Source: Mytilus californianus (Eukaryota). Taken from it: a DNA stretch of 64,000 nucleotides. Made by a program: the position numbers and the translations under genes. Where the stretch lies: contig NW_026262723.1 in assembly GCF_021869535.1 (NCBI RefSeq), forward strand, positions 63,984,001 through 64,048,000, in the 5' to 3' direction. Numbering within the stretch: position 1 is the stretch's first letter; every line of letters starts with the position of its first letter. The notes under the pieces were generated by a model that worked only from the letters and a program-made list of their open reading frames with translations, was not told the DNA's origin and did not search any database. Of this stretch, positions 31,733-55,227 are shown piece by piece.

Positions 31733-32956
31733 CAGTGGGCCTACACAAGGTACGTAACAGAACGTACAATGAAATCAGTACAGTGACAGGACTTATCTCT
31801 ATGATACCGGTAAAATAGTTAGCAAAATACAACTACACTATGTACAAGTAATAAGCAATACCGTATCAAAGTATGATAACATTTCCTTAAAACAAGGTCA
31901 AAGTACTTAAGCTGCTGATATGAAATCATGTCATGCCATGCTATACTTGTATTCTATTATCTATTATCGGCTATACGTTTTATCAACTCGTTGTCAAATA
32001 TCCCAATTTGAACATCTTACGATATTTATTGAAGAGGATTGAATGTCCAAATGCCTTTAAAGCAAAGGACAATAGCTTAAAATCTACAGATCATTATAAT
32101 CTCCATAAAAATAAGTACAGATCCAGGATGTAGGATAAGCTATAAAAAGCGTCTAGACAACATAATGTGAAACATAAATTGGAAAGTATATACAACAGTA
32201 CGAAAAAGGCACTGTACTACAGCATGTACAACCTCCTGTCTTCGGATAGGCACCTTTAGTATATATACTGATGGTATAATAAAATGAAAGATGTCGGGAA
32301 TATGTCAGTGGAAGCCAACTGCACCATAACCGCCTCTCCCAGTACATAAATGAATGAATAAATAAATAAATAATGAACTATCTGCACATAATCATCCCAT
32401 TTGCATGCAATAGTCCCTTTACAGTAAGCAGTTTATCAATGTTATTCCATTCGTATTTGTTTTTCTTGATAGGATTAACCGGATATTTGAGGTTTTTGAT
32501 TTGATAGATTTCCGACCGGGAGGAAAATAAATGTTGTTGAACAACTTAACTGTATCTGTATAAGTAAATATGCAGTTTATAAACCTTGTATTGTGATGGC
32601 CTTTTCAAACTTAATAAGAATGGACATATGACTATTGATCGATGCACATTATAAAGGTGATTGAAGGGTGAATTTCAATAAAACCTCAGGTCCTAAAATA
32701 TTTTGTCTTGTTAACGAAAAAAGGCAAGGGAAAAGAATGCTAGTTCTATATCAATGTTTATATCCATCAATGAAGCAGATTTGGTTGTCTCAGTAATATG
32801 TCTAATTTGGTCTTTCCTCTTTCCAGTTTTATAAATTTTCATTAAACAAATCATCGAGGAGCAGCGCACATGTATTTAAGGTCATTGCAGTGCTTATTGT
32901 CTGTTGATGTACCTGTCAACTACCTTATGCAAACATCATATTATTTAGAAAGTATA
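31733..32956. repeat. Left part of tandem-duplication unit A (continues at 55030-58020); paralog of 58027-59240
   Basis: Near-continuous alignment from gtgg.cctacacaaggtacgtaacagaacg to ttatttagaaagtata. Confidence 0.92.
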
Positions 32957-35900
32957 GACAGGTTTTTCCGATTATCTGCCTTAGTTTGTGACGCGACTCC
33001 TAGGCATCGTCGTAGTAAGATCGCCATTACAACCGTGAAAAAATATAAACAAGATATAGATCTATATGCCCTGACCGCATATAATTAAATGTAAACACAA
33101 GAATGTGAAGTCGTACTTGACCTCGGCAAAATTATATGTGCTATAAATAATAAAGTAATTAGATAAGGATTCTAAGTGTATTGCAGGCCAGGTGTCGTGT
33201 CCTTAAAATATAACTGTATTTAATATGTTACACGCGGGACATAATAAATTTTATACGAATACTAATCCCAGGTTACATGTCGATTATAATCATTTGGTAA
33301 TCAAAATATTAATAATTATAACGCATACATAAATAAAAAATAAATAGTCTTGACCGGTCGAATGTGATATATCAGAAAAACCAGGGTGCAATTTTATCAA
33401 ATCATAGAAATTTCTGTGGTCAGACCTATAATGAGACAGTCCTAAAACTTAACAATCCACTAATCAGACGGTCCTACAGAGACGAGAGTTTTGTGCTTTT
33501 TGCTTGACTCACGTATAATGCTCAAAATTGAGTGACATTTTCGTATTACTTTGGTGTTCGCATGAATTGCGCTATATGCTATCGATGCGTCGGACCATAT
33601 GTATATAGATATAACTTTGCGATTAGAATATGGGCTTAAGAAGTTTTGAACTTTCACGGCCCATGTATTCCTATAGTTATAATGTGTTCGATTCCAATTT
33701 CTTTTGCAGAAAATTACTCGACACACAACTACTATAGTATGTATAGTATATAACATCATGATCCAGTCCATGCATAATATAAATGAATGCCATTAAACCA
33801 CATATCCAACTATCTCGGTCATCACGTGACTTTTGTGATTTATCAATGGCCGATAGGGTGTCAGTGTAAATGTATGGGACACTTCGGTTTATCGGTTCTA
33901 ACTTTTTTATAACTTTATGTATTTAACCTTCCAACCCCACATTTTTTAAATCTTTCTTATCGGCAAATAAATATGTAATAAATTTCAGTTCAGAAGTAAC
34001 ATTTCTTGCTTCAAATTAGGTTTGAAAATCGAGGTTTAACAACTGGAAGGTCCCGTTAACGCCTTTGTTAAAACTCGATAAAAATGCTATAGGACCATCT
34101 TATATATTCAAATATCTTATCTTATTTATTGTTAATAATATCCTTCCAACCCCCAAAACTCTAAATAAGACATTAAAGTTGGAAATTCCGAGAACTAAAT
34201 CAGTTCAGGTAACGAACATTTTGCTTCAAAATTCGATTGAAAATTCTCAATTTTTGCAATCTCGTCGAAATTTTTAAAATGGCGGAGTCTACCGGAAGTA
34301 ATCATCATATAGCCACGGTGTGCGAAAGATTTGTCTGTTTATCGTGATTATATGTTTTATAAATATCGACTCTATATTTATAGTTTATATTTTAAACTTT
34401 ATAAGTCCTTGTTTTAATACATAAAATTTTCGAGAGAAAAACAAAAAATTTAGCTTGTCCAGACAGTTCAAAATGAGTATAAAGTGCATGAGAACATAAT
34501 ATGATTTGTAAATCACTGGTTGAATTTGTGTCTCGCATATGAACGTTTGAAACAGCAATAGAGGTTCCTTGTGATCACAAATGATCTGAATTAGACTTAA
34601 TATAAGAACAATATTATCTTTCCCTCTTCATTTTGTTGAAATGTCCTTTTTTTCACAATTCTGGTACTGTACTTGCAATTTTTTTATGACTTTATGGTTT
34701 CATTTTTTTGTATCATTTGTGAACGCCTGCGCTCTTACGAATGAATTATAATGTTTAAAGCATGTATATGGGGAGGGTAAGGCACCTGCAAACACCCCAC
34801 CACAATAAAATGTGCCTGTCCCAAGTCAGGAGCCTGTGATTCATTACTTGGTTGTCGTTTGTTGCTGTACATCATTTTTCTTCCTTCGTTTTCTTGGGAT
34901 CTTATTTTGTACATAGATCCGACCAATAGTCTCCTCATTTGAATTGTTTTATTTTTTGTCACTTCGTGGCCTTTCATACCTGGCTATGCGGTGTAGGTTT
35001 TGCTCATTGTTGAAAGCAGTACGATGACCTGTAGTTTTAAATTTCTGTGTCATTTGGTCTCTAGTATTGGCAATCATACCACATCTCCTTATTTTTATAA
35101 ATAGTCCTCAAGCCAGTTCTGGTTGTTTTTACTTGTGACAAATGTATCAAGTAGTTGCAATTGTGCGAGGAAAAGTGTACACAAAAGAATATTTATCCAT
35201 GATAATGATAGTTTTTTTTTTTCTCACACTAGTTATTCGCCCAGATGTTGTTTGCCTCACTGTTTTTTTTTATTAATTTTCTTTAAAACTCAAACGTTAT
35301 AGATTCTTAAGATTTGAAGAAAAATAGCTTCGGGTTTCACAAGTACTGAATTGTTTTAATTTTGTCAAGTGAAGACCTCGTACAGCTAATAATGTATGCT
35401 ATGTGGTAAAGGTTTTGCTTATTGATGAAGGAAGTTAAGGATGACCTACAGTTGTTGTAAATCACCCTTAATATCCAGTGGATATGTAATGTCTTAACGG
35501 CCATTATATTGCCTCTGCTTTTTATAAACCAATCTGGCAATATAGATCATTTTTACAAATGTTTATTGTTGAAGACCTTTGGATACGTGTCAGTTTTATG
35601 TGGTTAAATTTTAATTTTTTGTTTTTTTTTGTCTTATGATCTCTTATTTCAATATGTATGAAAATGATAACAGTTTCTATTTTAAATATCTCTGAATCTA
35701 ATAAAATACCAACAATAATAAGTTTAATATAAATTTATTTTGCATTTCATAAATAAATATCACATAAGATACATAAATATCACATAAGATACTCAGTTAT
35801 ATCTATATATATATACATTTGATAACTTAACAATGGGTTCATTTTGAACTTTCATAAACATAAATCTCTATTTCAAAATAAATTAAACATATAAAAAGCA

Positions 35901-36314
35901 TATGATAATAATGGTAAACTGTCTTTTAGTAAGCATTAATCTAGACATTTTGTACATAAGGGCCAATAATAATGTTCACATGTGTATATGTCCCATACAT
36001 TTATTGTATGTATAAACTTAACAAGATCCAAGCTTGCTTAAATAAAGATCTTCAATTTAAACAATTCTCGATTTACAATATTTAATTGTGAGAATTACAG
36101 CAATGTTTTCATCCAATGTGCATTTAATAAATTTAACACAGATAATATTTACACAAATATCTAAACAAAAATAGTTTTTTTGTCAAAATATTTATCAAAA
36201 TTGATGTTCTTGAAAATAAATCTTCTAATTGGTAAAGATTTACAAAAACTTTATAAAAATACACATGTTCACATAACTATTGGCACAATCATCAATAATA
36301 CATAAGTCTACTGA

Positions 36315-38843
36315 TCAAGTAAGACTTTTCAAGATATCTACAAGTTTCTTTCTATTTCTAACTCTTGTTTTTTCACCCTTTTTCTTAAAAATCAATTCTT
36401 TTATATCATTATCACTAAGATTTTCAATATCTAACTCATTTACAGTACTAGAACTTTCAACATGACCTGCAGCAAAAATCTCATCATCAATTTGCTTTCG
36501 TCTATCATGTCTACTAGTGAAAATATTATTTTCCCACCATTCTGATTTTTTAACATATTGCCGTTTAGGCCTAGCTACATTTTCTGCATGATTAAACTCT
36601 AACCTCTTTCTGACTTGCAAAGCCTCAGAGGGACCGTCCCATTTGGAACATTTACGTTGATGAATTGTCTTAATTACATCGTTATTTTTCTCAACACCTT
36701 GGTTCGAAAACCTTTTCAAAGAACCATATTTTGAAATAAAACAAGGTACATGGTAGATAAGACAGTGCATATAAGGTGTTACATTACATTTTAAATACCC
36801 TTGTCTCTCGATGGACAAAAAAAGTTCCATCCAACTCTTAATTTTACAAAATATATCAAATCCAGTTACATTTTCACATTCTTTGCTACATACAAATAAA
36901 TAAATGGCATAAAAATCCTGCCATACCTTTACAACCTTTTCTTTTGTATCAGTGTTCAGAACATCTGAATTTAACAATTTGTCTGGCAAATATTTTAACA
37001 ATTTAATTTTTTCACCACCAGATAAGCTGGTCCATTCTAAGTCGTTGCTACCCTTTGGTGTCCAAATATGGAAAACAACACCGCAACTTTGTACCAAATC
37101 TTCAAAATTGTCAATATTCACTGGTTTACAACCACTTTTGATTTCTTTTCTGATTTTATCATCTTTGTTTTTGCAATCATCTATCAAATTTCTTAATAAA
37201 ATGTCAGTTACCCTTAACATCAGATGCAATTCATCAGGTACATAGTGATCAACCCCAATTTCTAATAATGGTTTATGCTTGACACCAAACTGACTTTTAC
37301 TCTGACTACTCAGTGTAACAATTTCATCTATTGAACGCAACATATCTACATTATGGTAAAAATCCCATGCTTTGGAAGTGTCAAATCTGTTGTCTTTGTG
37401 AACTTTGCACCAAGGACAGGCAAAATTACCTGTTGACCCACCTAAACCAAGTAAAATTTGAATAAATTTCATATCCCCACCCACAAAAATGTCTAAATCA
37501 ATATTGTGATCATCAACAGAAATGACTTTTTCCTTAGCTAAAACACTTAGCTGCTCAAAAAGAGGTTTACAAGAAGACCTAAGGTTTTCATAATTCTCAC
37601 TACATTTAACTACAGCTACTGTATTTAAATCATTACAAGATAAGCTACATGTATCATCACTTGATAAAACCTGAACAGAAAAAATTACAAAGTTTGAAAT
37701 TCTGCTCACACGAGCACCATCACCTGAAAATTTAATGTCTAATTTGTTTACATTTGATAAATTCTGAAAGTTCTGCTTTATAACTCTTTTCAACTCTGTA
37801 TCTAAATTAATCATTGCCCCTGGCATGTTACCAGGTAACCTCTCTAAGTGAAAAATTTTGTTTATGTCATTTCTACTTTGAACCACAATATATTTTCGAG
37901 GCATGTTATCGAACAGCATTGAAAATTCATGATACGCGGAATCACTCACACAAAATTTGTCTAATAAAAAAACCAATTGTCTCAAATTGTCTTTCTCGCT
38001 TGCTTGTAGAGTGTCATAGCTGTCTTGTGATGGGGAGTTGCTCAAATTCAAGGAAACTTTTTTACCAGCATCTGATATACAGTCTAATTTAGTAGGATTC
38101 AAGCCAAAAGTGTTTGCAAAACACAATGCCTTTTCAGCATAGCTTTCTAATGTTTTCAACTTCCGGAGTCTTTGCCTTGGTTGTAAATCATCAAACTTTT
38201 TTCCACTATTAGAATATTGCTGTTTTTCGATGTTCTCTATATATGTGGTCAGTGTTGAATTTCTCTTTAAAATATATTCTATTTGGTCAATACATGTGTC
38301 TAAATTTTCAGCAATGTCTGCACTCTGATTTTGTTCACTTAACAATAAGTTAAAAAGATCTTTGCATTTTTTTTCAAGCTCTACTTTTTCATGGTTGAAT
38401 TCAGATATTCTGCAATTTAAAGAAGCTACATTTTCTAATTCACTCTTAAAAATGGTAATGTTGTATAACTTGTTGTCATACTGGTATCTCTTTGACCCGC
38501 TGCGGTATTTTACCTTGTAATCATTGTAAACTTTTGAACAGAGGCGATTTATATGTCTCTCAACTCTACCACTTGGCAAAAACTGGAGAAATGTCAATTG
38601 AGAATTTATTACAGCAATAAAAGACAATCCTGTATCTTCAGAGGTGTTAAGCAATCTCAATAAAAATTTACTACTAAGTTGTAACGTTAATGCTACTGAT
38701 GTTGAATCTACAGATTGTTTATTAACATGATATGGAGTCTGTTGAGATGTGAAGCTAACGGAATTTTGAAACTTTTGTAGCGAAAGAGGAGACAAAAAGT
38801 CAGACATTGTTAAAAAAGTCAAAAGCACCAAAGAGTGAAACAT
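36315..38843 (-). CDS. RAG1/Transib-like DDE transposase, 842 aa, uninterrupted ORF
   Basis: Motif order matches the RAG1 core: KFSGD375GARVS, VGGD457MKF, FAC476PWC479, VPDELHLMLR, TPYMH693CLIYH698V, SNQGVE718KNN (mouse RAG1 D600, D708, C727/C730, H937/H942, E962). An NBD-like FDDLQPRQRLRKLKTL segment lies upstream and a short helical tail at the C-terminus. Confidence 0.88.
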   Translation of the reverse strand: MFHSLVLLTFLTMSDFLSPLSLQKFQNSVSFTSQQTPYHVNKQSVDSTSVALTLQLSSKFLLRLLNTSEDTGLSFIAVINSQLTFLQFLPSGRVERHINRLCSKVYNDYKVKYRSGSKRYQYDNKLYNITIFKSELENVASLNCRISEFNHEKVELEKKCKDLFNLLLSEQNQSADIAENLDTCIDQIEYILKRNSTLTTYIENIEKQQYSNSGKKFDDLQPRQRLRKLKTLESYAEKALCFANTFGLNPTKLDCISDAGKKVSLNLSNSPSQDSYDTLQASEKDNLRQLVFLLDKFCVSDSAYHEFSMLFDNMPRKYIVVQSRNDINKIFHLERLPGNMPGAMINLDTELKRVIKQNFQNLSNVNKLDIKFSGDGARVSRISNFVIFSVQVLSSDDTCSLSCNDLNTVAVVKCSENYENLRSSCKPLFEQLSVLAKEKVISVDDHNIDLDIFVGGDMKFIQILLGLGGSTGNFACPWCKVHKDNRFDTSKAWDFYHNVDMLRSIDEIVTLSSQSKSQFGVKHKPLLEIGVDHYVPDELHLMLRVTDILLRNLIDDCKNKDDKIRKEIKSGCKPVNIDNFEDLVQSCGVVFHIWTPKGSNDLEWTSLSGGEKIKLLKYLPDKLLNSDVLNTDTKEKVVKVWQDFYAIYLFVCSKECENVTGFDIFCKIKSWMELFLSIERQGYLKCNVTPYMHCLIYHVPCFISKYGSLKRFSNQGVEKNNDVIKTIHQRKCSKWDGPSEALQVRKRLEFNHAENVARPKRQYVKKSEWWENNIFTSRHDRRKQIDDEIFAAGHVESSSTVNELDIENLSDNDIKELIFKKKGEKTRVRNRKKLVDILKSLT

Positions 38844-38880
38844 AACATGTGGTTTCTGGATAAAATATAATGTTAATTAT

Positions 38881-41800
38881 TCATAATGTGAAAGCGGTTT
38901 TTGAAGACGTGATGACTATCTTCTCTACAGGAATCTTTTTTGCTGATACAATTGTATTGTTGACATCTGGCAGGAACACCTTTTTGAATGTAACAGTTGG
39001 TTGCACTTTGAGTGGAAACTCTAATATTATACCCTGTCCATGAACATTGAGCTTTTTCTCCCAGTGGCAAGATAAAGGTAATTTGTCAAAGTCTGCTTTT
39101 ACAACGCTCTTGGTCTTTAAACAGCCAAACAGGTATTGGTATACATCTGTTGGAAAAGATAAAACTGTCCTACAGTTACGTGAGGTAAGTCTGGTGCTGA
39201 TAGCGTCCTCAAAAAGTTGACTATAAATCTTTAAACACTCATCACTTATGGTTGGATTGATGAATTTGTTGAAATCAGTTTCTGGAATATGCTGTCTTGG
39301 TTCCCAAGTTGTGTCATGAAGTGCAAATCCTTTCCATTTTACAAGGTACAGTTCACCCTGAAAAAAAATTAAAAAATTAATACTTAGTCAAAATAAAATG
39401 TTATCACAGAGATATGTCTCGCCTTTTTGTAATTTTGATAATACAAATGTTGACTCTGCCACCAACAGCATTAATATCTATGTCGTACTTTCTGACGGGA
39501 CAACAAACCAGAAGAAACACTGCCTTATGATAAGGGCATAACAAACAGTTTTGAAGAGATGCCAAGTAATGCTTAATATTTGACTGTCTACTCAAAAATT
39601 GTTGTCGGATTCAAATGTCACAATTATATTCAACAGAAGATACTGTATATGTTACCAAGAAACAAGTTTTATTGAGTTTAATAGCAATAAAAATTTAAAT
39701 TGCTACACATGGTATAGCTAGCACAATAAGACCAAGCTTTGAGCTAAAAATCAAATGTGTCCCATGATGTAGCTGTCAAGAAAGTCAACGAAAATATTTA
39801 AGATGAAGAGGACTGATAGCGATTCCAATATGTGGCTTCTAAGTAATGCATGCAATGTAATAAAAATTTCTTAGTCCGAGAAAAAAAATTAACTTGTCAA
39901 TTGAGTAGTACATCTATAACAATGGGTATGAATCTCACAACTCAAAATATGATTTATAAAGTACCTATTAATTATTGTTTTTCCTAAATATTTTCAAATA
40001 CATGGATTAACTTCAGAAGCTTCTGTGGTAAGCCTGTTTTCTTTAAAAACATTTATTGGGTGGTATTTATTTCTTACAATGTATTTTATTTACAATGTTG
40101 TAAAATTGAAATACATAAAGTTGATTTTGGAATAGACATGTATAATTATTCCAGAAAATTATAAAAAAAATTATTAAAATTTAATGTTGTATTAATCAAA
40201 GAGAAATAAAGCTAAAAAGTTAAATTCAGTCCAACATTCAATTTTTTCCATTTTTTTTGGAGAACAGAAGAAAATATAATACTTTTATTAAATTTAAATA
40301 AATACAAATAAATCATTTTATTTGAAGTCAATTAAGAGAATTAAGGGATTTACTTTCTTTAATTTAACAGACGAGGTAACACTGTGTAATAGTTTAAGTA
40401 TGCATGTGTATATTGTCAAGTGACAGATGCAACACACCTGAGGACATATCAACAGGGGGTAAACCTTAATATAACAGGATGTTACTTGTCAGGTGTGGTA
40501 AACAGGATGGTAATTGAGTGTTTATAAAATCTGACCAGGCACCTGAGGTCTGATAGTAGTTTCTGGATGGGGAATTAAAACAAAAATTCATTCTGCTTTT
40601 TCTGTTAATTTTTAAGATTTAAGCTGAATTTTGTATGCATATAAATAATACTCAGCTTTTTCTGATTCTGTACATTTTACCAAATTAATTTATGTATTGC
40701 TTTAATGATATTAACCACAACTATTTAAAGCTTTTTTATATCTATTGCATAGTAGTGGCATATTGGCCAGCGGTAAATAGCTCAGTGGAAAATTTCAAAC
40801 ATTTACATGTCACATTTTAATTAATTGTATATGGATACAAACTCATAAATATCATAAAATTGGGCTTCTTTAGCAGTGGTGGATCATAACTTTACTAAAG
40901 GAGGGGGGGGGGTTCCCTCTCAGTTAAGGGGGTCGCTCCAGTCATGCTTCAGTGATTCCATATGTTATCAGAATGTAGGACAGAAAGTCACAGGACAAAA
41001 AGTCACAGACAAAAAGTCACAGGACAAAAAGTCACAGTTCAGTTTTGAAATTATTTTTCTTTGAATAAGAAAAAACTTATTTTAAAAAAACATTTTTGTA
41101 TTTTTCTCTAACTATTATATATAAAGCAACTTTGTAATTAAAATCTTTTTAATAAATATCAAAAATTATCAAATAATTGTTAAGAAAACAAAGTGTCAAA
41201 GTGGCTTGGTACTTATATGGCTTCATGGTGCCATGAAATATATCCTTTGCATGATTAAAATTTAATAAATTTTCATTTATCAAGGCTAATGAACAATTTC
41301 ACAAACTGTAAAATGAATATATGGAATAAAAAGAAAAAAATCAAGATCTTTCTCTTATATATTCAAACAATTGTCAACAAATTATTTGTGACTTTTTGTC
41401 CTGTGACTTTTTGTCCTATCAAATTTGTGACTTTGTGTCCGGTGACTTTTTGTCCTGTGACTTTCTGTCCGTTTACGATGTTATCACAACCACACTGAAA
41501 AGGGGGGTGAGGGCTTGGCTTGGATGTGCCTATGTTAAGAATAAATAGATGGAAACCTATGAAATAAGCATTGATGTCTCACCTCTATACATGTATATAT
41601 AATTTTAAGATGTAAAGATGTGATATGATTGCCAGTGAGACAACTATTCAAGAATTATAACAGAAAGTCAAAGGACAAAATGTCACTATTCAGTTTTGAT
41701 ATTTTATACCTTTATAATTTTGCTTGGTTAAGACTTAATAATGTTTTGACTCTAGTATGAAGTTATGAAACACTACCTTTAAAGATGCACTTAAAAATGG

Positions 41801-44800
41801 TATATAAAATAATTAACAATCTTCATTAAAGTGTCTGGTTTAGAAAAGCAAATGGTACAGTTATCATATGCATAGACTATGAATCTAAATTAAGAAGCTG
41901 AAGTAAATAGTGTATAGTGGGTCAATATTCTATAAGAACAGAGGGTTTGTCATGTGTTGGAATGGGGGATGACATTTATGTGTCAGTTATAAGAGACAGT
42001 AACAGTTAAGACATTTTAAGCCTTTTAAAATTGGGTGGGCACTAAACACATGAAGATCGAGTTTTAAAATGTCACACAGAATAAATATGAAGTATATATA
42101 TATATGTTTGTGGTTTACCATCTTTGCCGCAAGTTTATTGTTTTCTGTTTGGTATTAAATTAATATAATGATCCATTTTGTTACATCTTGTGATCAATTT
42201 ATTTGGCAATCGTCAATGGCTGTCAGCAGGGTTTAAGAACATCAGTTGTTCGACCTGTTAGTCAAATGTGTTTTGTTAAAATATGCTTTTTCACTTTTTT
42301 TGGTCTTTTGGAAAATATTTAGACCCCTCTATCATGAAATCTGTTTTAGGCACATATAAAAATTGCAATCATAGCTATAGGTTTGAACATTGTTTTCAAT
42401 TTAGACTTGTTTTATAATATATATATATATAAAAGATGTGGTATGATTGCCAATGAGACAACTCTTCATAAGAGACCAAATGACACAGAAATTAACAACT
42501 ATCGGTCACTGTACAGCCTTTAACAATGAGCAAAGCCCATACCACATAGTCATCTGTGAAAGGACAAAAAAATGACAAATGTAAAACAACTTATAAGGGA
42601 AACGGCCTAACATTAATGTAGAACAAAATGAACGAAAAACAAATATGTAACACAGCAACAAACGACAAGTAATAAATTACAGGCTTCTAACTTGGGAAAG
42701 GTACATACAGAATGTGGCAGGGTATAACATGTAATTAAGCTGGTTCCTAACCCTCTCCATAACCTTGGACAGTATTGTAACCTTAAAAAGGGGGGGGGCT
42801 ATTTCAATACTTAATTGATAGTGGGTGCCGCTCAGGTTCTGTTACCAAAAAGTACCTAACCCTTTTCATATAATATAGAAAAATGTATACCTTTTTATTG
42901 AGTAGGTAAAAATGTAAACTTTTCCCACATTCTTTGGGTTTCATGTGTAGTGTAATGTACATTGTAAGAGTCAAATACCAAAAGGTAAAAAGAGAAAAAT
43001 TGGTTGATAAAAACAGCTGGGAATTCCAAGAAAGATGACAGACGAAGAAGTTATGGGAACTTTATTGACCTAATCATATATTTCTTTTAGTTGTCCGAAC
43101 CAATTCACATATTTTTTAGCTTAAAAAGGTGATGTGTATTCCACCTTGTTTATAAGAAGTGCCCTCTCCTGGTTCATGTGGTTATAACAGTACAACATAA
43201 GTACACACTTTAAACTAGACAAAGTGATCCCCCACCCCATCTCTACTCTGAAAGTAACTGTATTATAATAAAGTCAATGTGAGACTTTCTTTGAGATATC
43301 ATTGTGTCTGAGAGACACAAATGATGCCCTACAGATACAAAGTTTTTTACTTAAAAATACACAATAGTTGAGCATGGGAGCACATAGGATTATGTTCTCT
43401 GTAGGATTACATCTTATACAATAAATACTCCAAAATATCTGTACAAACAGCCAGCAAAGTAAAAACTTCCTAGCATTCAAACTGTTACGGAGGAGTTATC
43501 ATGAAATGCTATGTACCTTTTATGCAAGTATATACTCCACAAAATAAAAAGTATGTATGTTTCCCCTCCCCCCATCCGGATTAAAAATAAGTCCCCTAGT
43601 CAAAAACTTATATTCCACAAAAAAATTGAAATAATTCTTATTCCTGAAAATAATTTGTTTCCATTTTTGAAAAGTGCTTGAAAGCAAAAGGATTGATAAT
43701 CTAAATAAATACACTCAAATTGAGCATAAACAACTGATAAGTCAAACCATTCATGTGACCAGTGTATGACATCTAGTTAAAAAAAAATGACCTGCCTTCC
43801 TGGTCTGTTTACAAAGGGTAGAGGCTGGGGAGGGGAAAAAGACATTCTTTTAAATGTGGCCCAAAGTTCAACAATCTCCCAAAGAAAAAGTATTGATAAA
43901 AAAAAAGACAGATGTATGGAGAGGAGTAAAACAATATGTCCCCCAACTTACAGTTGTGGGGGCATATATTAATCAGTTAATAAGGCTTAACTCACCAGAA
44001 TGAGATGGATACAAATAGAAAAACATATAACAAAAACATAGAGTGGATGTGGCCTTGAACTTGTACTTTTCAACATTTAACAGACAATAAGTACAGATCT
44101 GAGAGTACTTGCAGTTACTGACTGCGAGTTCAAAGCCAATAACAATTTAAAAAAATCATGCATCAAGACTTAATTATCTATCGGTACACATACATGTTAT
44201 GATGAATCTTATACATGTTATATATTTACCAATGGTATATAAAACACTGTATCTGAACTGATTTAAATGTTTATGTCTAACTGATTTGCTAATATATATG
44301 TAAGTTAAATGAACACGTGTATTTATACACATCTAATATGCTGAAAGAATAATTTACAGAATAAAATTGATGGGAAGTCAGATTTTTTTATACGACCGCA
44401 AAAAATTTTTGCGGTCGTATATTGGTATGATCGCAAAGAATTTTTGAGGTCGAATATTGGTATGACGTTGGCGTCGTCATGCATAGACACATTGGATTTC
44501 GCACAATAACTTTAGTTTAAGTGAATGGATCTCTATGAAATTTTACCATAAGGTTCAATACCACAAATGAAAGGTTGGGATTGATTTTGGGGGTTATGGT
44601 ACCAACAGTTAAGGAATTAGGGGCCAAAAATAAGCATTTATGTAACTTCCAGACAATAACTAGTGTGTTAGTGTATGGATCTCTCTGACATTGTACCACA
44701 AGGTTCAATATCACAAAGGGAAAGCTGGGTTTGAGTTTGGGGGTAATTGCCCTAAACGTTTAGAAATATGGGGCCAAAAAGGGGTGAAAAAAAACAAGCA

Positions 44801-47800
44801 TTTTTCTAGTTTCCAGACAATAACTTGTGTTCAAGTGTATGGATCTCTCTGAAATTGTACTGCAAGGTACCTTACCACAAAGGGAACGCTGGGATTGAGT
44901 TTGAGGGTGATGAGTCATAAGGGGGTTCAAAAAAATTGGGGGGGGGGATTTTTTTTTCCATTTTAAGACTTACGATGTATTTAAATTGGTAATTATGATT
45001 GAAAACTCCATTGGAAATTTGAATTGAGATTATGAAATATCTTGGGGAAAAAATTTTTTTTTGGAAAAGATATTTCTTCAAATATTTATTCTTTTTTTTA
45101 TTGAGGGGGGGGGGTCAATACACAAACAACATAGTGTATTTCAAGAAAGCCAAAAAAAGGGGGTTAATTTTTTTTTTTGGGGGGGGGGGGTTGAATTTCG
45201 CAACAGCATAGTCATGATAGTGTATTGCACAAAAGCAAAAACTGAATATAAATTCAAATCATATAACCAATTCTAAGTTCTTTGACTACAGTTATTTGGT
45301 GTCAGAAACCTATTATGTGTCAAATATTTAATTACAATCCAAATTCAGACCGGTATCAAGTGCAAATATTGTGTCCATTTTTGCCCCAACTGTTCAGGGT
45401 TGGACCTCTGCGGTCGTATCCAGCTGCGCTCAACGAAGCATTTTATTTTTTTTATAGTTGACTTTTTTTATTTAAGAAGTTACTTTTAAATTGCAACTAA
45501 TAAACAATGTTACCATGTAGAGTTTTTCTTGTAATATTGCTGTCTCCATGACATTTTCCCCAACTATATTTAATTCAAGAAGAAAACATTTTTAAACTAG
45601 GATTGAAGGCCAGGGGTTCACAAGAAGGAAACATAAGCAGTTATTTCTTGTCTTAATAGATCACCATATATCTTGGATTGTAATATAGCAGTAAAAGAAC
45701 ACTATTTCTTTTCCTGATTCTGCAAATTTTGAGACAGAACTGCAATTCCTGAAAAGGACTCTTATTTTAACTTACAAAAAAGTAATAAGTATAATTTTAA
45801 CATGCGTTTTGTTTAAACAGACTATTAGACTTTGTTCAATTAAATTTTTGATGTAACATTAATTAAATTTTCAATAGCAATTTATACTCAAAATTTGACA
45901 ATTCTGACCAACTTTTATTTGAAAAATTATCAGCCTGATGAGAGACTTATTCTTTTTAAAAAAGCATTATGAAAACTAAGTATTAAAAAATGTTAAAAGA
46001 GAAATTATTTAGTTATGATCTACCAACATACTGAAAGTTTTCCATCTGTTGAATTGGTGTTTTATATTTTAACCTTTGTACTTTATAATTGTATACTTAA
46101 AGAAACTATTAAATTGTAGCCACAATCACATCCCCACTGTGGAGTTAACTTATGGTTTATGTTTTACAAGCCCACTTCTAATGTTTTAAAATTAATTTGG
46201 ATCCATGAATTGTTATATATAGCAGTACATGAGCACTCTTTTTATATATACATGTATCTGCAAATTTTGAGACAGCAAAAGGGGGGCCCTTTTTCTTCTT
46301 CAATATTATGGAACTGCCCCAAAGTTATTTTATGTATTGGAACATAAATTATTTGTATCATTGTTCAATAATGAGTCTTGCCACTTTATGTTAAATAAAT
46401 GTATATTCTGAATGGACACTACATGCATGTACTTCATAGACAACCACTTTATACCATGTATACCCTTTAAAGTTTAAGCATGTTAAATAAAAAAATATTA
46501 AATCTTTACTTACATAAAAGTTTTCTTTTCTTTTATGGTAACTCTTCTTATGAATAAATGTTTATTTTCACTAATCACTCAAAACTCAAGTTATAAAATC
46601 CTTGAAAAATATTCACAAACTCATCACCCAAGTCTAGTTTATAACAATTATAATATTCTTCTGTAAAATTTAGCAGTTCACTTGAATGCTTTGAGAAGAT
46701 AACTGAATTTTTTAAATTAAAACCCTTATTTAATATAGTTGAAAGGATGGCATTGTCTAGACGAATATCCTCCAAAAGTGAAAAGCTTTGTCTCACATGT
46801 GTGCAACTGCCATAAAGGGGGGACCCATATTTTTTAGACAGTCATAAAATATCAACTTGGTAGAATATTTGCATATTGGCATGGCATTTCTAATAAACGA
46901 AGCCATAAAGTTATGACAGTTATTCACTTTGTATATAACCAATTCATATAAATGTTACAAAGTAAAATTTTGGAAATGAGTCAAAAGTGATTTATCATAA
47001 TATATCTTGTAAAAAAGAAATATATCAATTGAAAAAAAAAAATTAAAAAAAAAATTGGAATGATCAATTCCCAAATTTTCTTTATGTCATCTTTACATTT
47101 AAATTTAAAACAATTTATAAAGTAAATTTTTTATACATCACACCATGCAAATTAAAAAATTATTATTTTACATCAAGAATATCATATGGTACCGTATAGA
47201 CACTGTAAATTACCTTTGGAAAAAAAGATTATGTCCTCTCTGTATAAAGGAGGTAGAAGATGAATATCATTTTGCTTTAAAATGTCAAATTTTAGAAGAA
47301 TGTAGGCAAAAACTTTTTCAGGAAGTAGAGAGTATAGTTCCAGATTTCATCAAAATGTCTGATGAGGAAAAATTTGCATTTATGTTTACATTTATGAGTA
47401 TGACGTAACTAAAATTATTGTCAAGGGAATTAATGATTTATATGTTTTAATAAATAGCCTAGCTGATAAGAAAAACTAGTCGATGTAACAAAGTTATGAC
47501 TATTTTATATTTTTCTTATAGTATTTGTTATGATATATTTTATAACAATTGCATTATGAATTTTTGTACTTTTACTTTCAAATTTGCAAAAGTATCACCT
47601 CCTCCAAAACATCTAAATATAGTCTTATAGAATATGAATGTTGTTTTAAATTCAAATATTGTATGTTTGTAATGATTGTTATGTTTGTCTTGGTAACAAT
47701 CCAAGATTTGGATTTTATACCAATAAAATGATTTGATTTGATTTGATTTATGGCTTTTTCAATATCACACCTGTATCAACTTAAGGTGGTATGGGTGTCT

Positions 47801-50800
47801 TTCACCATCTTGGATTGTAAAAAGCAAGAGAACCTAAGGTCCAGATTTTCAATCAAGTTAGCAAAATTTGATGAAGCAATGCAGAAAACTAATCTGAATT
47901 TGCATTTAAAAGAACAAATTTATAAGATAATAACTTATAAAAATTAATATTTATTCCAGTGTATATTATTTTTGCTTGATTTTTAATGTTTTTAAATTGG
48001 CATTTTAAGGGGAGGTAATTGTGTAACTGCATTTTCTGAAGGAATCTACATGGAATTTTGCTATTCTATATTTTAGCCAGAAAAACATACGGTGACCCTG
48101 TCTTTTCTTTTGATATTCTCAAAGCATTTTCTTAAAGCTGTAATCTCGAATTTTATTTTACAATGCTATCATTTAGTTTAGATTCTTATCATATGATGAT
48201 GTTTTTTCCTGTATAATCCATACAAAATGTGTCATTTTGTCACAACCTGTAGCTTGAGAAAATGCATGGTGACCTATCATTTTTATTATATTTTTGAATA
48301 TATTTCAATAAAAACTACGTTTTTGGCAAAGTATGAACAAATTCTATCATTTTTATACACCCTTTTACAGGAGTATTTAATATGGTATACAGTTGACTGT
48401 CCATCGTCAACATGTCAGACATTAATTCAAAAACGCTTGTTCCAATATGCATGAAACTTTGGTGAATTAGTTTATATCTATTGACGTGAGCTCCCTTTCG
48501 TTTTTTATAAATTTCGGATTTACCGTTTCCTAATAATAATATAATAAAAAAGATTCTTTTATCGTTTAACATGTGTGATGATGAGGGACTTGTTTTTTAA
48601 TAAATGATTTTAAGATGATTTTATTGAAAAACATATTCTGTAAATTCAGTATTTAAAGTTTTCTTATAAATTCTTTTTTTTTTTTTTTAATTAATCAATT
48701 TTATTGCACCTTTGCTGTTAACAATTTACTCAATCTACAGCTTCAATTAAGTATCCCTTTAAATTAGTTATTGAATATCTAGGGAAAGATATTCAATAAA
48801 GTATATCTATAAAGTAAGTTATATTAATACAGATCAATACATTAGAACAATTCTACATAATTTTTGTTTTTTTACCGGAATACGGTACGTTTCTTAACCT
48901 ATACTGTATATGATTTTTTTATCAAAGCTTCACTGAACCGCGAAATTGATGATGTATTGATCTTTGATACTGATAGCATGACTCTTCAGTCGACAATAGA
49001 ATTTTGAACTTAAAACTTTTTGTTTTGTTTACAACACTGAATTATATAAGAAGTCTTGGATGATGAGGTAAAAATGTTTTTTTTTTCACACATTATTTTT
49101 TAACAGTAAATGTTGATTTCTATGATAAAGCCGAAGATCGAAAGTTGATCGAAAGTACACGTGGTCTTCAAATTATACATGTATGCAGTAACGTTGCATT
49201 GTGTTGTGTATTCTGCTCGCTCTCCTGCTGATTATAATTTTGCATTGTGAACAGGAATAAACATATTTAATAACAATTCTAATTCAGTGTAGCTGCAAGG
49301 ATTTGTATAGTGAGCTCACTATACAAATCCTTGGTAGCTGTAATAAATTATAAAAGAGTAAAATTGCAAATTTCAGTTAATGCACACCAATTGACTGGAC
49401 ACATGTGCAGTCATGTATTAATGAGGTCACAGCTAAGACTTGTATCTAATAATTGTCATTTCATTTAAAGGAATTCGAAATATTCCCTTGTTTTAAGTAT
49501 TATTTTCTTGTTTTTTTTGCTTCTGATTTTATTTATGTTTATAATGTCCCAGATTTCATTTTTGAAGATTTTGAAGATATCAATGACCTTATCTTTCTTG
49601 TCAGACATATAATATGCTTTATAGATGGAAAAGAAAATTATAGTTAATAGATAGTTCATATCAAAATAAGCTTCATCATCAATTTTATAGCCAGTTACTA
49701 AACTTTCAAGACTAAGTATATGCTTATCAATTTTTAAAAATGCTAATAGCTGGTCAACTTTATGCCAATAATGAACATTATATGAACAGGAAAAAAAGAA
49801 GTGTTTATAATCATCATGTTGCTTACAATAGAAGCACAAACCACTTGGTACTATTTTCCATTTATAAAGTAATTCATTACAGGCTAATATATAATGTATT
49901 ATTTTCCATTTAAACATTTTAAATTTGTTGTTTTCAAGGTAGTTAAAAATAAAGTTAAATGTGGACTTCAATTTTGTAGTCATTTTTTTATGAAGAATTC
50001 TTTCCCACATTAAAACTCCTGTCGGTTAATCATGTGTAAATTGACTTTGCAAGAAAGTATATACTTCTTTGTTACTCATATCTGGTGAAATTTCATGTTT
50101 TAGTAGTATATTTAACTTCACTGATGTTTTTATGTTGACAACAGTTTTGTAAGAGCTTTCTTGTTTTAAAATATTTTGCCAGTGCTTTGGTATAGCTTTT
50201 TTAACTAATGAAAATTTTCTAATCCAATCTTGTTTATTCTTTAAATTTTTTAGTACAGTTTCTGATGATATGTATCCGTTTTCATCTAATATATTATTGA
50301 TGTACAAAATATTACTATTAATCCAGTTTTGAAAGAACAAACATTTCCCATTTTCTTTGATAAGATGATTTCCCCATATAAGTTGTTTTCTAACCTGAAG
50401 AAAGTTTCTTGGTATGATTGTTTGGCCTCCTTTTATTTCTACCCATGTTTTAATTAATTGTTTATAGAATTCAGGTAAAGATTTATAATCTATTTTATTA
50501 AGCAAATTAACATTTGTTAAATTCATTCTGAATAAAAGAAAATCTTTCCCAAATTTATCAAGGTAAAATCTTGGAATAATTTTCCAGTTATCATTTTCCT
50601 TTTTGATTAGTTTTAAAACCCATCTGATTTGTAATGATTTAAGATAGCAGTCTAAATCAATCATTTGTAATCCTCCCTCAAGATATGGTTTACATAATAT
50701 AGTACGTTTAACTTTATCTTTTTTTCCACTCCATATAAAATTATATATTAAATTCTTGAACTTTTGCTTTATTTCCTGTGTTATTATCATACTTGATGCA

Positions 50801-53577
50801 ATGTATGTTAGGTTTGGTAAAATTAAAGACTTAACTACAGTTATCTTTCCTATTAATGTTTAGTTTCGTTTGTTCCATCCTTGAATTATTTTTTCACATT
50901 TGTCTATTTGCTTTTCTGTATTTAATTTATGACATTCTTGATAATTGTATCCAAAATATATTCCTAGACTTTTAATGTGGTCTTGTTTCCAGTTTATATT
51001 TTCAAATTTATCTTTTGAATGTTTAAGTTTCCCAAGCCACAAACCTTCTGTTTTATTTCTATTCAATTTAAGTCCAGAAAGGCTTCCAAAAGTTTCAATA
51101 ATGTTAAGGGCTATACTTATTTCTTTGCGTGTTTTTAAAATCAATTGAGTATCGTCTGCCAACTGACATATTTTTAGCGAGCAAGATTTTCCATCTAATT
51201 TGATTTCAAATCCTTTTAGTTTGTTATTTTCCCTTAATTTAATTGCCATTATTTCAACAGATAAAACGAAAATTAACGAGGATAACGGACACCCTTGTCT
51301 AATCCCACGGAATGTATTAAAGGGGGCAGACACCCATCCATTATTTAAAATACACCCTTTTATATCTGTATACATAGTTTCAACCCATTTAATGAATTCC
51401 TTTTTAAAACCAAATTTTTTTAAAGATTCAAACATAAAACACCACTCCAGTGAGTCGAAAGCTTTAGTAAAGTCTAAAAATAAAATTGCACCATCTACTT
51501 TAAATTTTTCAGAATAATCAATGATGTCTTGGATTTGTCTAATATTAAATCCTATGTATCTGTTTTTTATGTAACCTTTTTGATCAGAGTGAATTATTTT
51601 TGGAAGTACTGATTTTAATCTTTGCGCTAAGGCATAGGCTAATAATTTAACATCATAATTTAATAATGTGATAGGTCTATAGTTATCAAGGGAGAGTGGA
51701 TCATTTTTTTTTATACAAAAGAGATATAGCTCCAATTTTTTGGGAGTTGGTTAATTCACCTTTTTTAAAGCAATAATTGAAAACGGGTACTATCAAATCT
51801 TTAATTTGTTCCCAGAATTTTCTATAAAACTCAACATTTAGTCCGTCCAAACCTGGGGCTTTGTTCAGTTTCATTTTAAATATAGCCTCTGTGCATTCAC
51901 TTATAGTAATTTTTCCTTCACATATATTGCTTTCATTTTCATTAATTTTTTTACATTCTTTAATAGTTTCAAAGTACTTTCTTACCTCTTCTGTGTCAGA
52001 TTTTGTTGAAGTATATAATTTAGTATAATAATTAACTTCTAGATTTATTATTTTGTTTTGGTCATATGTTACCTGTTTATTTTCATCATACAGTTGAGTT
52101 ATAGTTTTCTTATAAATTCTGATTGATATAATTATAATTTATTACAAGCCTGAAGGGAACCTGTAAAAGTAAACCTAAGCTGGGTTTATCCTTAATCAAC
52201 TGAAAAATTATGAAGTTAATTAATCAATAATGGATTATAATCTTGATGATCAGATATGTTTTCATAATCATATAAAATAAATAATTGGCCATAAAGTTCA
52301 AAGAAAATTAGAAAAGGGACACAGGCTAATTTTCACTCAACAACGAAGCCATCAATGTTCATGTTTGCACAATAATTTTCACCTTATATATGTGTTCAAT
52401 CAAGTAAATTGTTATGACCCTTTATTTTTTGTAAAAAAAATATTCTTTTAATATCTGAGATGGTCTTCTGCAAGAATTGAAGGAACAAATTGACAGACAT
52501 ATTTATTCTACTTTTGATATCAAATTCCAAACATAAACTCAGCCTTCACGCTTAACTTTTGAGTCCACAAGCCAGATGCTCAATATTTTGAAAATTTTAG
52601 TTGGATTCTGTTGGCTTGTAGAGGAGAATTTTACAAGCCCGAAAGCAATGTTACAAGCCATGGCCGTAGGACTTGTGGTTAAGCGTGAAGACTGTAAACT
52701 AAAGCATTAAAATCTTATTTAAAGTTGGATATACATATATATATAACAATACAATATACATGTATTAAAGCTCTAAACATATATAAATATTCAAAATGTT
52801 CAATAATGTCATATATATTATTTTTATGTAGAATTACTTCATTATTTCTCATCTATATAAGAATAACTGATGTATAGGATTCTGACTGCCTACTAAATCA
52901 GATTAGACTCTAATATTTTTGACAATCAATGCTTTTGAATGGGTTCACATGGTTTGAACCCTCCCTTTTGCAAATTGCTGGATCTGCCCCTTTAGGCTAT
53001 ACTTCTGATCATGTCTACTATAAAATTAAATGACTATTTAAGAATATTGTATAATTGTTGAAAGCAGTATAGTATAGACTATAGTGTCCTGTAAGTATTC
53101 ACATTTTCTTCTTATCAATTATATACCTGTTGGTTAACTTAAACTTAAATGTATGTATAAGGTTTTATTGGTTTTTATTTTTTTATTTTGGGAAAAAAAG
53201 AGGGGGGGGGGTAGTGAATATTACCGACATGTATTAAATGCCACAGACATATATATATATATATGTCTCTGCAAATGCACTATACTTCTAAACATTACAA
53301 GAACCGTAGGATGGAAATGTATTATAAATAAGCGGGTTTAAGTATGTCTGCATTGAATTATTGACGAGAACTCTCGGAAAACTATAAATTAAAGTAATCA
53401 TAAAATCATACAAATCCTTACCTCTTTAGGAAAATACTTTGCAGTGATGATTCTCTCAATCTCATACTCTTCAGGCAGTACTTCGTGTCTCTGCACCATC
53501 TTCTTACTGTCTTTTGGAAGGCTTTCGCCGGAATCCAATAACTTATAGTTGATCTGACGATTAGGTCTTAAGAACAT
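38881..53577 (-). CDS. Two-exon chromodomain protein, 210 aa (exons 53577-53422 and 39357-38881; 14,064-bp intron)
   Basis: GAG|gtaagg donor and ttttttttcag|GGT acceptor join in phase 0 to give ...EEYEIERIITAKYFPKE|GELYLVKWKGFALHDTTWEPRQHI..., a canonical chromodomain, followed by ~130 aa without stops to TGA at 38881. Confidence 0.87.
40971..41477. mobile_element. 507-bp foldback MITE with 9-bp TSD (Mutator-type)
   Basis: Inverted arms built of ggacaaaaagtcaca repeats; ATGTTATCA duplicated at 40962-40970 and 41478-41486. Confidence 0.85.
42430..42780 (+). repeat. Long copy of the dominant dispersed repeat family
   Basis: Begins aaagatgtggtatgattgccaatgagacaactct, matching the 18680 consensus. 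Confidence 0.85.
44383..45447 (+). mobile_element. Non-autonomous Helentron/HINE-like element with an internal ~160-bp tandem array
   Basis: 5' hairpin tatacgaccgc...gcggtcgtata; three internal units (acaataact...gtgaatggatctct.tgaaatt.tacc..aaggtt) at ~44500, 44650 and 44815; 3' gcggtcgtatccagctgcgctcaacgaagca; T-rich flanks. Confidence 0.7.
47185..47748 (+). mobile_element. 3' fragment of a CR1/L2-group LINE
   Basis: KRLCPLCIKEVEDEYHFALKC...CRQKLF C-terminal Cys/His motif, then a 3' UTR, AATAAA at 47722 and an (ATTTG)4 tail. Confidence 0.75.
48675..52102 (-). mobile_element. 5'-truncated L1/Tx1-type retrotransposon, inactive ORF2
   Basis: RT motifs (NYRPITLLNYDVK, GIRQGCPLS, QLADD) and a C-terminal zf-RVT region. 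ORF pieces 51735-50860, 50790-50026 and 50010-49465 are in one frame, separated by two in-frame TAA; there is one homopolymer frameshift near 51710. Poly(A) tail and AATAAA near 48675-48705; 18-bp TSD agttttcttataaattct at 48657-74 and 52103-20. Confidence 0.93.
52540..52694. mobile_element. 155-bp MITE with CAG...CTG termini and 6-bp TSD
   Basis: cagccttcacgcttaac / gttaagcgtgaagactg inverted termini; taaact at 52534-39 and 52695-700. Confidence 0.8.
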
Positions 53578-54564
53578 GTTGTATCGTTAATTAGTCGTGT
53601 AATAGTGAATGGTTATTCAGATTACGCGCGTCTATAGTGACGGAAGTATAACACTACCGCCACCTAGGAAGTTTAATTACCTCCCTTGCTCAATTACCTG
53701 GTCCCAAAAAAGTTATCGGGAACCAGCTAAAAAGTAATTACAGAGTTATCTACCGTAATTATGACCGTTATAGTTGCATATGACCAAAGAATCCAACATG
53801 TAAATTCAAAGCGATGATTAGTTATGTTTTAAAGCGTCATTTAGTGAACTGCACCCAGGAATAAAATATTTTACAAGCCTTACTTTTCGAAATATTAAAG
53901 CGCCGTCCCAAATAACCAAATATCAAACTAAGTGTTAACCTCATCAGTACGATCGAGCCACAGCTGATCTGCAATATCTTAGTCGAAAATTAAATTGTGT
54001 AGTAATTCCACTAAAGTAAAGAAAACTTAGTTACATAAGTATACAATAAGGCGTCACTGTCATTCATAATATTTTTTAAACGGCTGACGAGGTCCCCCTC
54101 CTTTTATTTAATTTTCAACTCCTTACTCCTCTGTTAACAATATTTTTGTCTGAGTTAATATAGTCGGAATGTCTGTCCATTTTGCAGCATAAAGATACTA
54201 TAGAAGTCGTCATGAATGAAAAAAGTTCGTCTCTTCACACTGGGTTGATTTGCTTGCAATTATAAATACATGTAGCCTCGGGGTCTGTTTCATTGTTATT
54301 AGCTTCATTTATGGTTAATCCAGACATTTTTCCGTTTCCACTACAAAAGTTTGGGGGCACGCGGGGTCCCCTCTTTTTTTCAAATTCCTGGATCTGCATC
54401 TGATGTCGAGGTGGATCTTCTATACAAAAGAGGCAGATGCACTGTAGTCATCGGATTAAATTTTATAGATTAATTTAAGTTTTTAACAGTCGTTTTACAT
54501 CGTGTAAACATTCGTCAGCCAGTGTTATTTTACTTTCATAACAAGTTTTATTAAAAAAAAAACG

Positions 54565-54859
54565 GATTGTGTGCAGTGGCGCATCATCCAAAAAAAATGT
54601 CCGGACCATACAAAAACCTGTTTATGCAAAGTTTTTTTTATGTTGATACGGCTTTGGTCCACTCAGGTTTGTTGGCTCGTCTGAAGGCATCACAGTCATA
54701 AGTCGTATATGAAATCAAACCAGGGCAGTCATCGTGCAACTCGTTGTGTAATTCGCATATTGATTTTTTCCACACCTGAAGTTTTTTACGATTATTTGTA
54801 CAACTATTAACTGCACAAGAAATGCTTCCGTGTTTTTTATAACTTTCGGCAGCATCCAT
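54565..54859 (-). pseudogene. Decayed THAP-domain ORF just inside the right end of the 22-kb element
   Basis: MDAAESYKKHGSISCAVNSCTNNRKKLQVWKKSICELH...WTKAV, then frameshifted V.SGHF..DDAP.AHNP, resembling the THAP C2CH end (VCSxHF...PT..NP). Contains stops and frameshifts. Confidence 0.6.
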
Positions 54860-55140
54860 TGTAAAATAAATCAGAAAATGAAAGAAATACAAATGTAAAC
54901 AGAAAATCGATAATGTTTTGATCAATACACGTGCGTTATTTTTCACGGTTGTAATGGCGGATCGGTCACGTGAGAGGTTAATGGATACGCCCATGTTTTC
55001 TAGGTCAATTACAGATAAACCCGTCTATAGTACGCAAACAATATTTGTCTCATATTACGTTTTTTCATAGATATGCCTTTAAGCTAGATACTTTTAATAA
55101 GGTGAATATAAACAAATATATACACAGGCAACTGGTGTCA

Positions 55141-55227
55141 ATGGAATCTACTCTCTCTATGGAATCTACTCTCTCTATGGAATCTACTCTCTCTATGGAA
55201 TTTACTCTCTCTATGTAATCTACTATG
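55141..55227. repeat. 18-bp minisatellite downstream of mytilin copy 1 (4 units plus a partial; 3 plus a partial at 59351-59420)
   Basis: Unit atggaatctactctctct. Confidence 0.9.

Follow-up and report, generated by a model that had tools for sequence, protein, structure and literature searches.

Transib transposons in the strict sense duplicate 5 bp of target on insertion and are bounded by terminal inverted repeats (TIRs) starting CAC(A/T)(A/G)TG, which resembles the heptamer of the recombination signal sequence (RSS). RAG2L is a kelch propeller with or without a PHD finger, and the PHD finger of RAG2 links V(D)J cleavage to histone H3 trimethylated at lysine 4 (H3K4me3). A tail-to-tail layout of RAG1L and RAG2L is characteristic of RAGL transposons (PMC7204232). 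Together with EnSpm/CACTA, Mirage, Chapaev and ESTA, Transib makes up the CMCT clade, with 5'-CA..TG-3' termini and a target site duplication (TSD) of 2-5 bp (PMC12730594). A fungal lineage with TA TSDs also resembles RAG1 by HHpred (PMC12730594), and a match to RAG1 alone therefore does not place a family inside Transib. DUF1280 corresponds to Chapaev and falls in one clade with RAG1 (PMC3985635), and Chapaev transposases consistently keep an N-terminal Chapa zinc finger (preprint 10.64898/2026.01.24.700457). Here we describe a 22-kb insertion that carries a RAG1-like transposase gene in a 64,000-nucleotide stretch of the genome of the mussel Mytilus californianus (contig NW_026262723.1, positions 63,984,001 to 64,048,000), referred to below as the window, in whose numbering positions are given. 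The insertion very probably consists of two unrelated cut-and-paste elements, a 2.1-kb non-autonomous outer transposon and, nested within it, a 19,982-bp RAG1-fold transposon.

Nested organization of the insertion

When the inserted block was aligned with the loci fetched from the genome, homology was confined to 32957-33801 and 53783-55025, and in about 50 loci the alignment jumps directly from 33801 to 53783 with an overlap of 1-2 bp, as in the uninterrupted copy L002, which reads ...GCCATTAAACCACCAAAGACTCC. Because the short copies run from 33801 straight to 53783, the window holds an ordinary 2.1-kb copy into which 19,982 bp have been inserted. The left arm of this copy (844 bp, 32957-33800, plus strand) holds a terminal repeat and a subterminal motif, and 30 other copies align collinearly with it as far as 33801 at 93-99% identity; the right arm (1,243 bp, 53783-55025, plus strand) holds the second subterminal motif and a 118-aa open reading frame (ORF). 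The block that is missing from all short outer copies (33801-53782, genes on the minus strand) starts CATATCCAACTAT and finishes ATAGTTGCATATG. It is bounded by a pair of 22-nt TIRs that match at 19 of 22 positions, CATATCCAACTATCTCGGTCAT on the left (33801-33822, plus strand) and CATATGCAACTATAACGGTCAT, read inward, on the right (53761-53782, minus strand), so that its tips read 5'-CATAT...ATATG-3'. Compared with uninterrupted outer copies, the junction of this inner element shows a duplication of only A (1 bp) or AC (2 bp). At 100% identity the inner element is single-copy in the genome, and so are its ends. A subterminal TTATCGG motif was not clearly enriched, with 9 matches against 4.8 expected.

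The outer element belongs to a family of more than 170 copies, those with paired ends being short, and its ends recur far more often than chance would allow. With 160-nt queries for each end, all 40 places scored among the 170-187 genome candidates per end matched at 93-100% identity, and left and right ends paired at 26 places, 1.8-4.9 kb apart, none of which coincides with a match of the 842-aa transposase ORF. A first-pass annotation of this DNA had read the GAC...GTC bipartite ends of the 22-kb block as the RSS-like ends of a RAG1-like lineage and had proposed a genome-wide search for both end motifs as the check; on the result of that search, with 26 paired copies and the RAG1-like ORF in none of them, this reading is refuted. 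What had looked like bipartite RSS-like ends are those of an ordinary non-autonomous element and are silent on the evolution of RAG. The same annotation had offered, as an alternative, a RAG1-like unit nested in an outer THAP-type element. The nesting is borne out by the direct joins from 33800/33801 to 53783 and by the inner TIRs, and the THAP-type label is not, as the 118-aa ORF has no Pfam match. At C110:45364734-45371742 (L014, L015 and L033), two outer left ends that have a flank in common lie 3.4 kb apart, with a single right end after them, an arrangement suggestive of local duplication or of one outer element nested in another.

At the left junction TATA is followed by GACAGGTTTTTC, with the element running from 32957 (in context ...AAAGTATA joined to GACAGGTTTTTCC), and at the right junction GATAAACCCGTC is followed by TATA, with the element running up to 55025 (...GATAAACCCGTC joined to TATAGTACG). 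The 12-bp imperfect terminal repeats described in the first-pass annotation are present at both of these ends, with 10 of 12 positions matching, and inclusion of one extra base per side gives AGAC.GGGTT..TC. The subterminal inverted motif of about 26 bp that it placed at an offset of 62 was likewise found; as delimited here, this motif, CGCCATTACAACCGTGAAAAA, is 21 nt long and 100% complementary between the two copies, which lie 65/66 nt inside the ends at 33022-33042 in the left arm and 54939-54959 in the right arm. Self-comparison of the window, which is free of any N, revealed a tandem unit of about 4.1 kb in which 31734-32956 plus 55026-57855 correspond to 58028-62110 (plus strand) at 86-95% identity. 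The left flank (31734-32956) aligns with 58028-59240 at 95% identity, and the right flank aligns in two segments, 55026-55529 with 59237-59681 at 86% and 55441-57855 with 59682-62110 at 92%. The left- and right-flank alignments overlap by exactly TATA (59237-59240), and the paralogous unit, which reads ...AAAGTATAGTAGG with this single TATA, is therefore the empty site, in agreement with the earlier statement that the joined flanks reproduce the paralogous sequence with one TATA.

The length of the outer target duplication was determined from flanks across the family. Left flanks read NTATA in 27 of 30 copies, and right flanks read TATA in 20 of 29 and TATT in seven. The 16 left/right flank pairs comprise ten TATA/TATA, four TATA/TATT and two AATA/TATA, with the deviations always at the outermost base. 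A 4-bp TATA duplication, as first assigned, fits the window copy and fails in 6 of the 16 pairs. The 5-bp TATAG duplication that had been offered beside it fails because the G of GAC is constant in 30 of 30 copies, while the fifth right-flank base varies among TATA flanks (G 8, C 4, A 4, T 4). Duplication of TA is compatible with the pairs but would require GTATATAG at the empty site, where GTATAG is found, and a 3-bp duplication, tested against the 16 pairs and the empty site, did not fit all of them. The only reading that fits all 16 pairs and the empty site is an AGAC...GTCT element with a 2-bp AT duplication in a preferred T/AT/A target. The two TATA target copies lie at 32953-32956 on the left and 55026-55029 on the right (both unstranded), with only the central AT likely duplicated.

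The outer element therefore has what is expected of a non-autonomous TIR element, namely TIRs, a TSD and many near-identical short copies that lack a transposase ORF. It shares its size of about 2 kb, high copy number, uniformity, TIRs, target site duplication and lack of a transposase with elements of the miniature inverted-repeat transposable element (MITE) kind that are mobilised in trans, and differs from them in its AGAC...GTCT tips, its TATA target with AT core duplication and its THAP-like, Pfam-negative first exon. The last of these is the 118-aa ORF (54638-54994, minus strand), which contains ...SCAVNSCTNNRKKLQVWKKSICELH... with a THAP-like C-x4-C...C-x2-H pattern and may be the leftover first exon of the family's lost transposase. 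P elements duplicate 8 bp and Kolobok elements TTAA, and their THAP zinc finger is recognisable by profile. In the outer element the 118-aa ORF is Pfam-negative and the flanks read TATA or TAT(A/T), and it was assigned to neither of these THAP-bearing superfamilies. At position 53846 the window copy is without some 420-480 bp that are present in most of the other outer copies.

A RAG1-fold transposase and its chromodomain partner

The transposase of the inner element is encoded by an intact ORF of 842 aa (36315-38843, minus strand) that has one genome match at 100% identity, the next best being 54% identical. It contains D375, D457, C476-x2-C479, H-x4-H and E motifs, and the order after the second aspartate is C476-x2-C479, YMHCLIYH and then GVEKNND. 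No Pfam family, the RAG1 model included, matched it at cut-off, and below cut-off its 19 homologs gave RAG1 in 4 of 19 (best E 1e-4), SAP in 7 of 19 and DUF1280 in 1 of 19 (E 0.04). When a profile built from the 19 homologs was searched against the PDB, all 15 matches at E <=0.01 were RAG1 or RAG1L, with a best E of 5e-5; the alignment places GGDMKF...C-x2-C on the D708/ZnC2 region of RAG1 and YMH-x4-H...GVEK on the H937/H942/E962 region, in mouse RAG1 numbering. An AlphaFold (AF2) model of the protein (predicted local distance difference test score, pLDDT, 80) gave the same assignment with Foldseek, as all matches listed to rank 48 were RAG1, amphioxus BbRAG1L or HzTransib, the best with an E of 2e-14 and a template modelling (TM) score of 0.65 over about 570 columns, followed by P element transposase at E 1e-3. 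Identity to RAG1 is 13-16%, and the RAG1-core features of the Transib superfamily, a DDE RNase H fold with ZnC2/ZnH2 motifs, are present. The nearest clusters among its language-model neighbours carry DUF1280 (score 0.91, 195 of 256 shared features). There is no Cys/His cluster within the first 300 residues of the protein, and a long N-terminal coiled coil is modelled at residues 139-207. At the C-terminus (36315-36420, minus strand) there is a SAP-like helix-extended-helix motif, subthreshold with a best homolog E of 7.5e-4, which may be a DNA-binding tail. The family is large, with 9,351 cluster representatives at E <=1e-3, and named homologs were found from Mytilus species, a coral and a sponge.

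A second gene, on the same strand, precedes the transposase. Its predicted first exon (53422-53577, minus strand; 52 codons) begins with an ATG at 53577, 205 bp inside the right TIR, and ends ...EEYEIERIITAKYFPKE followed by the donor GTAAGG; the second (38884-39357, minus strand) follows the acceptor ttttttcag, resumes in the same phase with GELYLVKWKGFALHDTTWEP..., and encodes the second half of a chromodomain and a conserved C-terminal domain of about 120 aa. The stop codon at 38881-38883 lies 40 nt before the transposase ATG. The two exons were searched separately, and our conclusions on the partner rest on these exon-wise matches. Exon 2 alone matches Pfam Chromo at E 7e-8 over positions 17-45 of that model, and two intron-less relatives (L079 and L113) contain the full Chromo domain at 58 and 50 bits. 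Fifteen partner sequences align over the further domain of about 120 aa, with the motifs DVxRYLFxGKG, LPxxW, HGQG and FPVK. In a predicted model of the partner (pLDDT 86) the chromodomain superposes on CBX1/HP1 with a root mean square deviation (rmsd) of 1.2-1.5 A, and by motif inspection it keeps the Y/W/F positions of the aromatic cage. Neither kelch nor PHD was matched in any ORF scanned.

The predicted intron between the two exons (39358-53421, minus strand) is about 14 kb long, with GT-AG signals and an in-frame junction, and is swollen by nested repeats, among them a fragment of a non-long-terminal-repeat (non-LTR) retrotransposon (49465-52138, minus strand; RVT_1 at E 1e-34, zf-RVT at E 9e-8). 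To judge from the paralogs, its length appears to be a local inflation by such insertions, the non-LTR reverse transcriptase included. At least 17 paralogous transposase ORFs are preceded, on the same strand, by a homolog of exon 2 at a distance of <0.1 kb to about 1.4 kb, and in at least 12 mussel paralogs, with introns of about 0.55-8 kb, a homolog of exon 1 is found a further 0.55-8 kb upstream. This recurrence upstream of many paralogous ORFs points to the split chromodomain gene as an old and conserved part of the mussel elements. Within the intron, GTGACTTTTTGTCC(T) repeats are densely clustered at 40976-41686 in both direct and inverted orientation, their arms reaching 100% complementarity; the cluster matches part of L038 and is probably a separate MITE.

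Termini of the RAG1-fold element and its relatives

The ends of the inner element travel with the transposase. A paralog on C99, whose transposase is 54% identical to that of the window, has a homologous right end with the tip motif at C99:73795738, followed by homologs of partner exon 1 (73795964-73796110) and exon 2 (73804138-73804596) and by the transposase ORF (73804820-73807291); exon 1 lies 226 bp inside the right end, and the relative orientation is as in the window. The contexts of more distant relatives were taken from 80 metagenome loci that encode them, and three families show comparable ends. One (L065) is a 5.2-kb element with 23-nt TIRs that start CATAGCCAGAAATTCC (CATAGCCAG at 148/5384), and a second (L122 and L126) is a 6.8-kb element with 21-nt TIRs that start CATGGCCAGAA (CATGGCCAG), each enclosing the same two genes; the third (L073) has long TIRs with CATA directly before them. 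The tips of these relatives read CATAGCC, CATGGCC and CATACC, those of the mussel inner element CATATCC/CATATGC, and a CAT(A/G)NCCA tip is conserved among families with transposases that share only about 28-34% identity with the mussel protein. The real ends of a RAG1-fold element can thus be given, and both these ends and the chromodomain partner are conserved between the mussel and related elements of other hosts. The layout of the genes differs, in that partner and transposase stand in tandem in the mussel elements, whereas in 25 metagenome loci the partner lies downstream on the opposite strand, convergent with the transposase. Some metagenome contigs with the transposase also carry, adjacent to it, RING/TRAF, death-effector-domain and Las1 genes (L134:3129-3776, L099:6362-7048 and L131:3858-5288, all on the minus strand), which shows those contigs to be of animal host origin. 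One transposase homolog (P0013) is labelled as a protein of a 'Candidatus Thiodiazotropha taylori' metagenome-assembled genome and is most likely host animal DNA binned into a symbiont genome.

We considered whether the CATAT repeats might belong to a MITE-like carrier of 1.3 kb in which the two-gene RAG1-like unit, with other and unrecognised ends, is nested or captured. A genome search with a degenerate form of the 22-nt tip motif gave 359 occurrences, where the reversed control gave 0, and most of the 359 are the two ends of a 1.3-kb family of about 180 copies, which shares with the inner element its right 42 nt at 90% identity and its left 175 nt at 72-75%; the inner element is, in addition, full of nested repeats. 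The partner ATG, however, stands close to the right TIR both here (205 bp) and in the C99 paralog (226 bp), and the compact 5.2- and 6.8-kb metagenome elements hold just the two genes between TIRs with the same tips. Nor was a second pair of TIRs found around the two genes of the inner element. Two segments flanking the transposase ORF, 34813-35106 and 42411-42781, are inverted with respect to each other, about 76% identical, and mimic long TIRs; they were rejected as the ends of the RAG1-like unit because they match dispersed repeats in unrelated loci, being found also in the flanks of L010, L016, L020, L024, L055 and L057. On this evidence we consider a carrier of this kind improbable.

Nor do we favour the view that the whole 22 kb is the single autonomous master of the outer family, its GAC...GTC ends being used by the RAG1-like transposase and the 2-kb copies being internal deletions of it. 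One long copy among many uniform short copies with one internal junction is the usual pattern of deletion derivatives, and against the empty site the block behaves as one insertion. Yet the limits of the segment that the short copies lack coincide exactly with its own 22-nt TIRs; it is these TIRs, and not the GAC ends, that recur with the transposase in the 54% paralog and in the families of other hosts; and the outer and inner ends have no sequence in common. The 420-480 bp at 53846 that most short copies hold and the window copy lacks further indicate that they did not derive from the window copy, and a master of this sort is very improbable. That the composite does not exist in the animal, its junctions being an artefact of collapsed or mis-joined repeats in a repeat-rich region, is hardly credible, since the assembly here has no gaps, both nested junctions are base-precise and agree in orientation and outer breakpoint, and a chimera would not yield an inner element complete with its TIRs inside an outer element that is itself complete. 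We keep to the reading of two nested and unrelated elements.

Placement of the inner family and a proposed mechanism

We place the inner element among the RAG1-fold transposons of the CMCT clade; its family is large, is not recognised by Pfam and is distinguished by CATNNCCA tips, the lack of a 5-bp TSD and a chromodomain partner. With Transib, RAGL and ProtoRAG it shares the RAG1 core fold, which extends over about 570 residues and includes DDE, C(2)C and H(4)H motifs, and a two-gene organization; the relatives from other hosts further resemble RAGL in having the second gene tail-to-tail with the transposase, and the second gene of the inner element encodes a domain that reads histone marks, comparable to the PHD finger in RAG2. 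It differs from Transib and RAGL in its tips, where the CATATCC/CATATGC of the mussel element and the CATAGCC, CATGGCC and CATACC of its relatives (CATAT, CATAG and CATGG types) stand in place of CAC..TG heptamers, and in its target sites, where the 5 bp of Transib were seen neither at the window junction (1-2 bp) nor at three metagenome elements (0 of 3), and in only 1 of 26 pairs of 1.3-kb MITE relatives. In contrast to the kelch-type partner of RAGL and ProtoRAG, with its PHD finger, the partner here consists of a chromodomain and a small alpha/beta domain of 120 aa, and in the mussel the genes are in tandem. The C(2)C and H(3-4)H motifs of the CMCT clade and its 5'-CA..TG-3' termini are present and, with the DUF1280 language-model neighbours, bring the element close to Chapaev. 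Unlike Chapaev transposases, the inner transposase lacks the Chapa zinc finger and has an N-terminal coiled coil instead, and a 2-5 bp TSD was not seen. A likeness to the chromoviruses (Ty3/gypsy) lies in the presence of an HP1/CBX-type chromodomain in a mobile element, except that the chromodomain here is in a separate small protein of a DNA transposon and is not fused to a retroviral-type integrase. Among the papers searched, none was found that pairs a RAG1-like or Transib element with a chromodomain, and the family may already be catalogued in Repbase under another name.

These features can be brought together in the following scheme. An outer 2.1-kb TIR element would have inserted at TATA in one copy of a tandemly duplicated 4-kb unit, and a transposon of the RAG1/Transib/Chapaev (CMCT) kind, now 844 bp into the outer element, would presumably have followed, duplicating only 1-2 bp on insertion. 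The latter is built as an autonomous element would be, with a partner gene and, immediately downstream on the same strand, an intact DDE transposase that would bind and cut at the CATAT tips. The chromodomain partner could be an accessory subunit through which the transposase is coupled to methylated histone tails, functionally analogous to the PHD finger of RAG2 or to the integrase chromodomain of chromoviruses. Later insertions, the long interspersed nuclear element (LINE) fragment among them, would have grown the partner intron from about 0.5-1 kb to 14 kb, which would account for the 20-kb size of the inner element.

The target sites of the family were examined in the 1.3-kb relatives, for which 10-20 nt flanks of 26 left/right pairs were read from pattern matches. 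In one of the 26 pairs a 5-bp repeat lies directly at the ends, and in another such a repeat is offset by 4 nt, a pattern that rules out a regular 5-bp TSD for the inner family. We tentatively propose, as a possibility to which we give less weight than to the nesting or the fold, that the inner element represents an undescribed, phylum-spanning RAG1-fold lineage that has an obligate chromodomain reader in place of RAG2 and integrates without the canonical 5-bp duplication.

Several observations weigh against the scheme set out above. In 15 of the 26 pairs of 1.3-kb elements the left flank ends with the base with which the right flank begins, against 8.8 expected from base frequencies; three other pairs share 2-3 bases, and eight share nothing. 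No duplication was found at the three complete metagenome elements (L065, L122 and L073), and no regular TSD of the 2-5 bp that CMCT elements should have was seen in the inner family. In the mussel a stop codon separates the partner ORF from that of the transposase, and it is their conserved linkage that suggests a role for the partner as a transposase subunit. The C-terminal alpha/beta domain of the partner had no recognised fold in structure searches that included Foldseek (Z <=4.3). Finally, the inner element is single-copy with a heavily invaded intron, and may no longer be mobile.

If the inner element does represent an undescribed lineage of the proposed kind, RAG1-type cutters were paired with chromatin readers on more than one occasion, or such a pairing predates that of RAG1 and RAG2. 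A second pairing of this type, convergent in many relatives, would make the coupling to a chromatin reader testable as a general property of this class of transposase, and the apparent lack of a regular target duplication, if real, would be unusual for a DDE transposase of the CMCT clade.

Around the insertion, a search of 32-56 kb of the window with Rfam gave no match. Just to the right of the insertion site, at 55140-55200, there is a tandem repeat of about 18 nt, TATGGAATCTACTCTCTC, which is found again in the paralogous unit at 59345-59400.

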